This document shows positions 45,601-48,600 of a stretch of DNA of 64,000 bases, in pieces. A model generated the notes under the pieces. It saw only the letters and a list, made by a program, of their open reading frames with translations. It ran no database searches and had not been told where the DNA came from. The position numbers were made by a program, and so were the translations under genes. This DNA comes from Gracilinanus agilis (taxonomy: Eukaryota): the NCBI RefSeq assembly GCF_016433145.1, contig NC_058131.1, forward strand, positions 612,940,708-613,004,707. Direction: 5' to 3'. Position 1 is the stretch's first letter; each line of letters begins with the position of its first letter.

Positions 45601-48600
45601 CCTATGTGCCTTGCCTTCCCAGCTAAACTGTAGGGGAGCATACCTCCTTCAAGAGGATGAATCCCCATCGTAACACAGAGCTGGGTATCAGTAAAGACTA
45701 GAGACATGGCACACGTGCTCTGGTGTGCTGGAGGGGGCTGCTCCATTCCCCTTTCCACTGAACTTGAGGACATTTTTTTGTATGCCCCACCCCTCTTCCC
45801 AATAGCCCAATGTGAGCACTTCCTCCCTCCCCTCTCTGGGGTAATGTGGGGTGGGAGGCTCACAGGTGACTTGAAGGTACAGTTTGGACACACGATCTCT
45901 AAAAGGTTTGCCAATGCTGGACTAGTGGGTTGGGAACAACTGTGTGGCTCAGTGAATTGAGAGCCAGGCCTAGAGCCTAGGTCCTGGGTTCAAATCTGAC
46001 CTCAGATACTTCCTAGCTATGTGATCCTGGGCAAGTCACTTAACCCCCCCACCCCCCCATTGCCTAGCCCTTATTGCTCTTCTGCTTTGGAACCAATACA
46101 CAGTATTGATTCTAAGAAGGAAGGTAAGGGTTTAAGACAAAAAAGACTAGTGGGTTGACCAGCTGAGAGAACTGAATAAATCCAGTTCCTTCTAACATTC
46201 AGGATCATATCTCCTTCCCCAGAGGTTCGATTTGGGAGGAAGGTGGATACATATGGGGGAAGAGGAAAGGAGGCACACTAAATCCACTGCCTCTGCTCCT
46301 TAGACCCATCTCAGCACCTCTTGTGGTTCCCTGCCTGCCCTCTCTAATCCTTTTGCATGACCCCAACTTTTCCCTCTAGCCTCCCTTAAGACCTCCCATT
46401 TTTGGCCTGGGAACCTACCCCACTCCCTCCTCCAGGCAACTTCCACTGATGCTGTCATAACAGCCTGGAGATGGGAGGCAGAGCCTGGCCTGGTTAGCAC
46501 CAAAGAAGGAAAAGAGGAGAGGAAGAGGCAAAGACAGTGCCCCAGGGGCCCGTCACCCAACTATGCAGTTCAGGCCTCCCCCAGCCCCATCTCTCCAGTA
46601 ACTCACATGGCCCACTGAAGCTTCTCATTCTTGATGGAACTGTACAGAGCCTGGGGAGGAGGTGAAGAGACATGGTTCAGAGGCAGGAACAGGCCCAAAG
46701 CTACCAATTCCAGGGCCTACTCCTTCTGGAGCAAAAAGAGATCCTCACACACACTCACCCTCCCCTTCAGTGCTCCAGACCTCCTCAGAGCTAACTGGGG
46801 GGTGAGGGTAGAGAGATAGACTAGCTCTGTCTTCCGATCCTGACACTCCCATTAACTGATATAGAAAGTGAAGAGAGGCTCGGAGTCAGGGGATGAGGTC
46901 TTGGGAGGAACTCCAGACCCTTGCTTCCGAGGCCCTCCTCCCCTTTGCTTCCAATGTCAGGAAGAAAAGAATCTCCAAACACACCAGCATGGGATTGCCT
47001 CTTGCACCACAGCCCTCTGAACTCGATGGATGATGCTTAATCAACGTTAGCTAAATTGGACAGACCTTTGGGGGTTGAAGAGGGGGGAGAAGGACCAGGC
47101 CAGTGGGTGGCTGGGGAGCTGAGGAGGGAGAGTCTCCTCTCTCTCCAATCTCCATCATCCCGCCAGCAGTGTGAGCTTAGGGAAGGAAAGAAGCTTCTGG
47201 AGCTGGGACCCCGGCACTCATTAATGGAGGCTGTGAGTATGTGTCTGGCTGTGGGGGTGTCTCTGCATGAGCGTGCGCCTTCCTTGCCTGTCTTGGTGCC
47301 ACTGTGGGGGTGTTTCTTCTGTCATTTTGCCTTGTGGGGGCATGCTGGTTTGTAATGTGAGCATGTGAATGATGTGTGTGATGCTGTGTGGACATGTGAG
47401 TTGTATGCAGGTGGGTGATATGGGTGCAAGTGGACCGGGACTGTGCTAGCTGAGGGCTGGAAGCTTAAATGTCTCCAGCACTGGCACTGGGGCAGGAGGG
47501 CCCCGACCTTCAACCACATCACACACACACACACACACGTATGCTCAGGCACACACGACCCTCCCTCATATGCGCAACAGCCTGTCCTTACACCCAGCCC
47601 AGAAACCCGGCTTAGTACTCACAACTTGGCACCCCCGAAGCCACCCTCCCAGGTAAACCTAACACCCTCATCACAACAATTCACCATACAATACAGCTGC
47701 TCCCTCCCTCCGCAAAACACTGTGCCAGCCAAGCCGAAGCTCCGGACACAATCGGGCCCCAGCCCCAGCCCCAAACATCAGCCCTCCCAGTTACCCCTGC
47801 CCCCACCCCCATTCATCCTCCTAGTCCCCTCCCTCGTCCCCGAGGTTGGGAGGGGGTGGCGGACCATGAGACGTCCCCAGCCGCCTCCTCTCCCTTCTCA
47901 AAGTCTGCCTGCCTGGCTGCCGCTCGGCCAGTCCCTCAGTCCCTGCGGGGGCGCGTAGCTCCAGTTCCACGGTAGCGGCTGCCGGCCCTGCGGTGTCCGG
48001 CAGCACGAGAGGACGGGGCCACCCCAGCTCCCCACCCGCCCTTACCGTCTTCTTCTTCTTGCGGCTCTGCAGGCGGCTGACCACCAGGTCGGTGTAAAGC
48101 ACAGGCTTGAGGCTGCGCGAGCGCTGGGGCCAGCCATAGCAGAAGGTCTCCCCTCCGCGGTAATTGCGCCCGTAGCGCACAGAGCAGAGCGAGCGGGAGC
48201 GCAGTCGCCCGGCGCTGCTGTGAATGCTGTTGACGCCGATCATGCTGCGCCCCAGCCAGCCCGGCCCCGGCCCCGTCCCTCAGCGCCCCCAGGTCCTTGC
48301 TGTCGCTGCCGCCGCCTCCGCCGCCATCCCCCGGCCCTGCGCCCCCAGCCCTCACCGTATGCACAGCGCAGGGACCCAGGCTGGGGCCGGGGCCGCAGAG
48401 GTTCAGCACCCCACCTCCCCCTCTCCGGCACGCCCCCAGCCCCTTCTGGCCGAGAAGCAGACCCCAAGGAGCGGAAGAGACAGCGGGAGACCCGCGGAGG
48501 GGTTGGGGAGAGACCCAAAGAGGGATGGACCACGACGACGGCGGCGACGACGGCGGCAGCGGCGGCGGCGGCGGCGGCGGCGGCGCTGGTGCTCTCAGCT

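Follow-up and report, generated by a model that had tools for sequence, protein, structure and literature searches.

EFA6A, the product of PSD (PSD1), has a short isoform, EFA6As, that lacks the Sec7 domain and keeps the PH domain and the coiled-coil region (PMC6522047; PMC6915736; both citing Sironi et al., 2009, J Cell Sci 122:2108). EFA6As regulates dendrite formation, probably by means of Arf6-independent actin remodelling (PMC6522047; PMC6915736; citing Sironi et al., 2009). The C-terminal region of EFA6A bundles F-actin, and an EFA6A PH-Ct construct induces actin-rich protrusions without guanine nucleotide exchange factor (GEF) activity (PMC6915736). This construct resembles the short isoform in having the PH domain and the C-terminal F-actin-bundling region; however, it is an artificial truncation, without the conserved 66-residue leader discussed below. 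PSD3 also gives rise to short isoforms without Sec7, EFA6D1s and EFA6D2s (Fukaya et al., 2016, cited in PMC6522047). They too correspond to a PH and coiled-coil C-terminal part devoid of the catalytic Sec7 domain, but come from another gene. A 50-kDa band of EFA6C is mentioned as well (PMC6522047), which an equivalent leader exon in a paralogue could account for. The present analysis deals with a window of 64,000 nucleotides from the marsupial Gracilinanus agilis (contig NC_058131.1, positions 612,940,708 to 613,004,707 of the forward strand). Sequence comparisons make it very probable that the minus strand of this window carries an alternative first exon orthologous to that of the Sec7-less short PSD/EFA6A isoform (mouse EFA6As, UniProt isoform 2). 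The short isoform itself is already known, and the marsupial exon is correct, ordinary annotation.

The coding part of the exon opens with an ATG at 48243 and comprises 66 sense codons, the last two of which (AAG ACG) end at 48046. The encoded leader is identical at 61 of 66 positions to the N-terminus of the mouse protein "Isoform 2 of PH and SEC7 domain-containing protein 1" (E 1e-42), which has 393 residues (XP_006527456.1; cDNA-derived BAE34694.1). EFA6As is itself said to be 393 residues long. Four mouse transcript contigs of 1.5-1.7 kb, coming from four different runs (L001-L004), carry the whole 393-codon coding sequence with up to 238 nt of 5' untranslated region (UTR). Since this coding sequence is in one piece in the contigs while its genomic span is many kb, they represent spliced mRNAs. 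The locus is PSD and not one of its paralogues: the best matches are named PSD1, and NFKB2 is the neighbour both in the window and at the pigeon PSD locus, which supports orthology. The mouse and marsupial forms share the leader, its join to the exon of the last Sec7 helix, the PH and C-terminal exons, the absence of Sec7 and the gene neighbourhood. They differ by five substitutions in the leader and by length (393 codons in mouse, 396 in the marsupial), the marsupial form being known here from genomic sequence alone. Three points weigh against this identification. The equation of EFA6As with UniProt isoform 2 rests on matching species, domain content and a reported length of 393 residues. No marsupial short-isoform protein was present among the cluster representatives of the search made with residues 1-66, where it could hide in the cluster of the long isoform. 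Finally, an assembly gap with duplicated flanks, located about 640 nt upstream of the leader in the presumed promoter, limits the mapping of the transcription start.

The exons of the short product were located by a tblastn search of the window with the 393-aa form of eutherians, and their ends were set from the splice sites (Table 1). The length of the product was taken from coordinates only, and the Pfam scan was run exon by exon. The leader exon sits in an intron of about 3.9 kb, between the second-to-last and the last Sec7-coding exons of PSD, and is separated from exon 2 by about 1.4 kb. Exon 2 follows a pyrimidine tract and a CAG acceptor (...cctccccag) and ends at a gtgagt donor. Because the end of the leader and the start of exon 2 both fall on codon boundaries, the reading frame is preserved. 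In the list of open reading frames (ORFs), the leader frame runs through the donor into the intron, giving 140 aa (47821..48243). The coding parts add up to 198+44+191+71+158+145+150+231 = 1188 nt, that is 396 codons, and the three residues in excess of the eutherian form correspond to +2, +2 and -1 indels in the last two, C-terminal, exons. The scan placed PH_9 in the exons downstream of the leader and found no Pfam family in the leader. All Sec7 pieces but the final helix lie upstream of the leader, including the GETQER stretch, which reportedly holds the catalytic glutamate (Franco et al., 1999); therefore the short form cannot be a GEF. An earlier note on this DNA had described a 66-aa leader ending at a consensus donor in phase with the exon at 46650 and a product of 66+330 = 396 aa with PH and coiled-coil domains and no catalytic Sec7. 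It had also counted three extra marsupial residues downstream and named a short brain isoform of about 393 aa as the counterpart. The splice sites, the coordinates, the domain content and the mouse protein bear out these statements. Its label of "hidden" exon was overstated, since the same exon is annotated in many vertebrates.

Table 1. Features of the PSD locus in the window, listed in the direction of transcription
Feature	Position	Strand	Length	Basis or remark
Sec7 piece	51744-51664	-		upstream of the leader
Sec7 piece with the GETQER stretch	51337-51227	-		Pfam Sec7 positions 86-121, E 9e-7
Last Sec7 exon upstream of the leader, long isoform only, ends ...ELLK in phase 0	50626-50537	-		Pfam Sec7 positions 143-172, E 6e-5
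Short-isoform 5' UTR and internal promoter (both presumed)	48881-48244	-		CpG island; partial mouse 5' UTR alignment
Upstream ORF, in frame with the leader	48327-48280	-	15 codons	sole upstream ATG (48327) within 638 nt 5' of the start
Exon 1, leader coding part of the alternative first exon	48243-48046	-	198 coding nt	sequence, homologues and dN/dS; no Pfam family
Donor GTAAGG, phase 0	48045-48040	-		sequence; GT at the same codon boundary in four other genomes
Exon 2, common to the long isoform, encodes the last Sec7 helix	46650-46607	-	44 coding nt	sequence and tblastn
Exon 3, linker and start of PH domain	41538-41348	-	191 nt	
Exon 4, PH domain	41145-41075	-	71 nt	
Exon 5, PH domain	40878-40721	-	158 nt	Pfam PH_9, E 8.6e-14
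Exon 6, PH domain end and proline-rich stretch	40561-40417	-	145 nt	
Exon 7, C-terminal coiled-coil region	40285-40136	-	150 nt	
Exon 8, coding part	39915-39685	-	231 coding nt	TGA stop 39684-39682

By itself, an ORF of 66 codons is not beyond chance in such GC-rich DNA. The same 2.3 kb contain 26 ORFs of at least 40 aa, with 257-aa and 209-aa ones in other frames, and at 70% GC presumably about a quarter of ATGs would stay open for 66 codons. The reality of the exon rests on its conservation. The word-based protein search covers only proteins of 0.55-1.75 times the query length; hence an exhaustive HMMER search was made with the 66-mer, and it returned 52 matches at E<=1e-3. Nine of them reach E<=1e-30 with about 90% identity, and a second group shows about 55-65% identity. 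All are of PSD1 type except two repeat artefacts, P0049 and P0050, which were rejected as spurious since these tandem-repeat proteins match in many short stretches. In the matches, the leader is either the N-terminus of short PSD proteins, joined to the exon of the last Sec7 helix, or part of ORFs continuing into unconserved intron. Named members of the clusters are mammals (mouse, sheep, flying fox, vole, arctic fox, Weddell seal, ground squirrel), sauropsids (pigeon isoform X4, other birds, boa, rattlesnake, gecko) and fishes (sturgeon, darter, perch, piranha, toothfish). No leader of PSD3 type was found in this search, the introns of PSD2/3/4 not being searched. The word search with residues 1-66 of the duck protein found complete short isoforms of 389-393 aa in pigeon, snake and eutherians; their Pfam domains include PH but not Sec7. 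The predicted short PSD1 proteins of Patagioenas (XP_065700084.1, 392 aa) and Candoia (XP_063163914.1, 389 aa), as well as fish models (Acipenser, Etheostoma, Perca, Dissostichus), have a homologous leader and the same phase-0 donor. The sauropsid leaders differ from the marsupial one by T at position 44 and M at position 19, and those of fishes by an insertion of 6-23 residues before the basic tail and by divergence at positions 27-40.

Genomic loci were read in pigeon, snake (boa), sturgeon and toothfish. A GT donor occurs at the same phase-0 codon boundary in all four, the leader contains no stop or frameshift in any locus read, and the indels of fishes are whole codons. Divergence of the leader among these loci spans roughly 400 million years. 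The ratio of non-synonymous to synonymous substitution rates (dN/dS) was calculated for the leader by the Nei-Gojobori method, fish comparisons being saturated at silent sites. It is 0.087 between the window and mouse, 0.169 between the window and pigeon, 0.061 between the window and snake and 0.069 between pigeon and snake, with an overall range of 0.06-0.25 across amniote pairs. Against mouse, the leader shows 15 synonymous and 5 non-synonymous differences on about 49 and about 149 sites, respectively. DNA similarity to the window extends over 48274-48045 for mouse cDNA, 48248-48020 for pigeon, 48243-48041 for snake and 48243-48078 for sturgeon; thus it opens at about the ATG and closes at about the donor. 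Residues before M1 and after the last leader codon vary freely across species. Taken together, these features are the mark of a translated exon rather than of a conserved promoter element. The comparisons establish the leader as a genuine coding exon, preserved by purifying selection from fish to mammals, and its frame is conserved from teleosts to mammals, as expected from the reading in the earlier note. What is new beyond the known isoform is only the strength and depth of this conservation, with low amniote dN/dS and motif cores invariant as far as the ray-finned fishes.

Four other explanations of the exon can be proposed. The DNA might be conserved as a promoter, an enhancer or a 5' UTR, the exon being non-coding and translation starting from a downstream methionine. 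The location in a CpG island and the 15-codon upstream ORF starting 84 nt before the leader would fit such a role. However, the excess of synonymous differences against mouse, the confinement of similarity to the interval between ATG and donor, the absence of stops and frameshifts and the whole-codon indels of fishes make this explanation very unlikely.

It is highly improbable that a full-length, Sec7-containing transcript includes the leader as an internal cassette exon. An ab initio vole (Myodes) model, P0075 (1191 aa), does continue from ...ELLK over about 100 unconserved residues to the leader, and eutherians have an open frame 5' of the ATG (P0072, P0063). In the window, unlike in rodents, an in-frame TGA (48282-48280) stands 13 codons 5' of the leader ATG, with no usable acceptor between them; this stop prevents any upstream frame from continuing into the leader as an internal coding exon. 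Moreover, the residues before M1 are unconserved across species, the long isoform of snake (P0096) joins ...DLLK straight to the next exon, and the mouse transcript contigs start with a non-coding 5' UTR. Alternatively, the exon could be intact while marsupials have ceased to use its promoter. This has very little to recommend it, as none of ORF, start, donor and CpG island is damaged and a dN/dS of 0.087 against mouse would not persist on a silent exon. The two lineages diverged about 160 million years ago. Finally, there is next to no chance that the leader is a fortuitous ORF ending at a GT without coding function: common as such ORFs are in this CpG island, the idea is refuted by the homologues with their conserved frame, start and phase-0 donor, by the spliced mouse transcripts and by the dN/dS values.

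The orthologous first exon lies in a CpG island inside PSD, as the earlier note had claimed: GC content is 0.70 and the observed/expected CpG ratio 0.68 in 48001-49000, against CpG ratios of 0.03-0.4 in the surroundings. The 5' UTR of the mouse transcript (contig L001:211-238) can be aligned as far as 48274, and a weak GC-rich match relates L001:30-91 to 48635-48572. The ATG of the upstream ORF has G at both -3 and +4, and the ORF ends 36 nt short of the main ATG. A short ORF just upstream, of 12 codons, is present in mouse transcripts too, where it overlaps the main ATG in a different frame. Such upstream ORFs may exert translational control on the short isoform. Transcription would be expected to start somewhere between about 48330 and 48900. 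The presumed 5' UTR or promoter contains a (CGG)n run of about 16 units, at about 48533-48585, and G-rich imperfect repeats are found nearby, at 48627-48690. The assembly gap covers 48882-49055. It is bordered by a direct repeat, 48697-48881 and 49056-49241, the two copies being 99-100% identical and spaced by about 360 nt, which is probably either a gap-closing artefact or a true tandem duplication. On the other side of the leader, the intron leading to exon 2 contains a (GT)n microsatellite, at about 47510-47540.

By analogy with mouse, the following scheme can be proposed. The CpG-island promoter in the 3.9-kb intron would start a short transcript, the first exon of which would encode the basic leader. 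This exon would be spliced in phase 0 to the exon of the last Sec7 helix, followed by the PH-domain and C-terminal exons, to give the 396-residue protein. Deprived of the upstream Sec7 pieces, the product would be unable to exchange nucleotide on ARF6. As suggested by mouse EFA6As and by the PH-Ct construct, its PH domain would mediate binding to the plasma membrane, and its C-terminal region would remodel F-actin independently of ARF6 activation. We infer that both the promoter and the junction are used in Gracilinanus agilis, and the cellular function is proposed on the same footing. Marsupial PSD would then have, as in mouse, an internal promoter and a short non-catalytic isoform, and gene models should include this isoform.

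The composition of the leader is strongly basic, with 15 K/R against 2 D/E and an isoelectric point of 11.25. As the earlier note had pointed out, it contains two RSRS motifs, at 15-18 and 41-44, and a terminal RKKKK, at 61-65. In an alignment of 20 leaders, the residues M1, G3, V4, N5, S6, S9, R15, R17, S18, V22, R29, R41, L45, K46, P47 and D52 are invariant. Position 44 is always S or T: mammals and fishes have S, birds and squamates T. The most conserved parts are the N-terminal MIGVNS, the two R-x-R-S/T cores and the basic tail. High conservation of the motif cores fits functional short motifs. The Akt-type pattern R-x-R-x-x-S/T is fitted by R13-L-R15-S-R-S18; some fishes have G, H or D in place of R13, at -5. 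Nothing in the leader matches the strict mode-1 pattern of 14-3-3 sites, RS.[ST].P, both sites having only the RSxS core and the second a P at +3; looser 14-3-3 binding may occur. RKKKK fits a monopartite nuclear localization signal, K-K/R-x-K/R, and a polybasic lipid-binding role equally well. A basic cluster ends every aligned leader, its sequence and position varying in fishes, where the insertion precedes it.

AlphaFold2 modelling of the leader alone, with the 20 leaders, gave a mean predicted local distance difference test score (pLDDT) of 59 and a predicted template modelling score of 0.19, with one helix at 50-62. For the full short isoform, mean pLDDT was 43 and even the PH domain was not recovered; this model, built on a shallow alignment including a Sec7-containing fragment, is uninformative. 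The leader model is weak evidence of disorder. On the likeliest reading, short linear motifs make up the leader, which would be disordered and serve in regulation or targeting. A phosphorylation switch, as supposed in the earlier note, would be compatible with such a disordered, motif-bearing segment. Tentatively, and with considerable doubt, it can be proposed that the leader is an ancient module in which two invariant basophilic sites, S18 and S/T44, 26 residues apart, together with the polybasic end near the weakly predicted helix 50-62, form a switch deciding where EFA6As acts. The module would be more than 400 million years old. If so, the switch could operate through bidentate 14-3-3 binding, for instance, or through masking of a lipid-binding or nuclear-import patch, and the short form, under a regulation of its own, would act against ARF6 signalling or as its partner. 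No experimental dissection of the 66-residue leader was found in the searched literature. Its conservation argues for a specific function, which studies using the PH-Ct construct would have missed.

The GenBank annotations of pigeon (L005:1-13456) and boa (L006:1-80704) split PSD in two at the leader exon, into an upstream gene with Sec7 and a downstream gene with PH that starts at the leader. These split models, like the vole read-through model P0075, look like annotation artefacts arising from the internal promoter. In teleosts, two distinct leader types occur (P0013/P0024/P0036 on the one hand, P0041/P0045/P0047/P0048 on the other), and within percids Etheostoma has one type and Perca the other. 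This distribution suggests that the alternative first exon was retained in both psd copies produced by the teleost genome duplication. Among the leader-like ORFs, the most divergent is P0051 (96 aa, from a Logan contig), which starts with MFGVNSIQ, is about 50% identical and could come from a basal vertebrate or from a paralogue. Beyond the 3' end of PSD, the death-domain exons of NFKB2 (38140-38755, plus strand) match the gene beside pigeon PSD and are convergent with PSD, the stop codons of the two genes being only about 0.9 kb apart.

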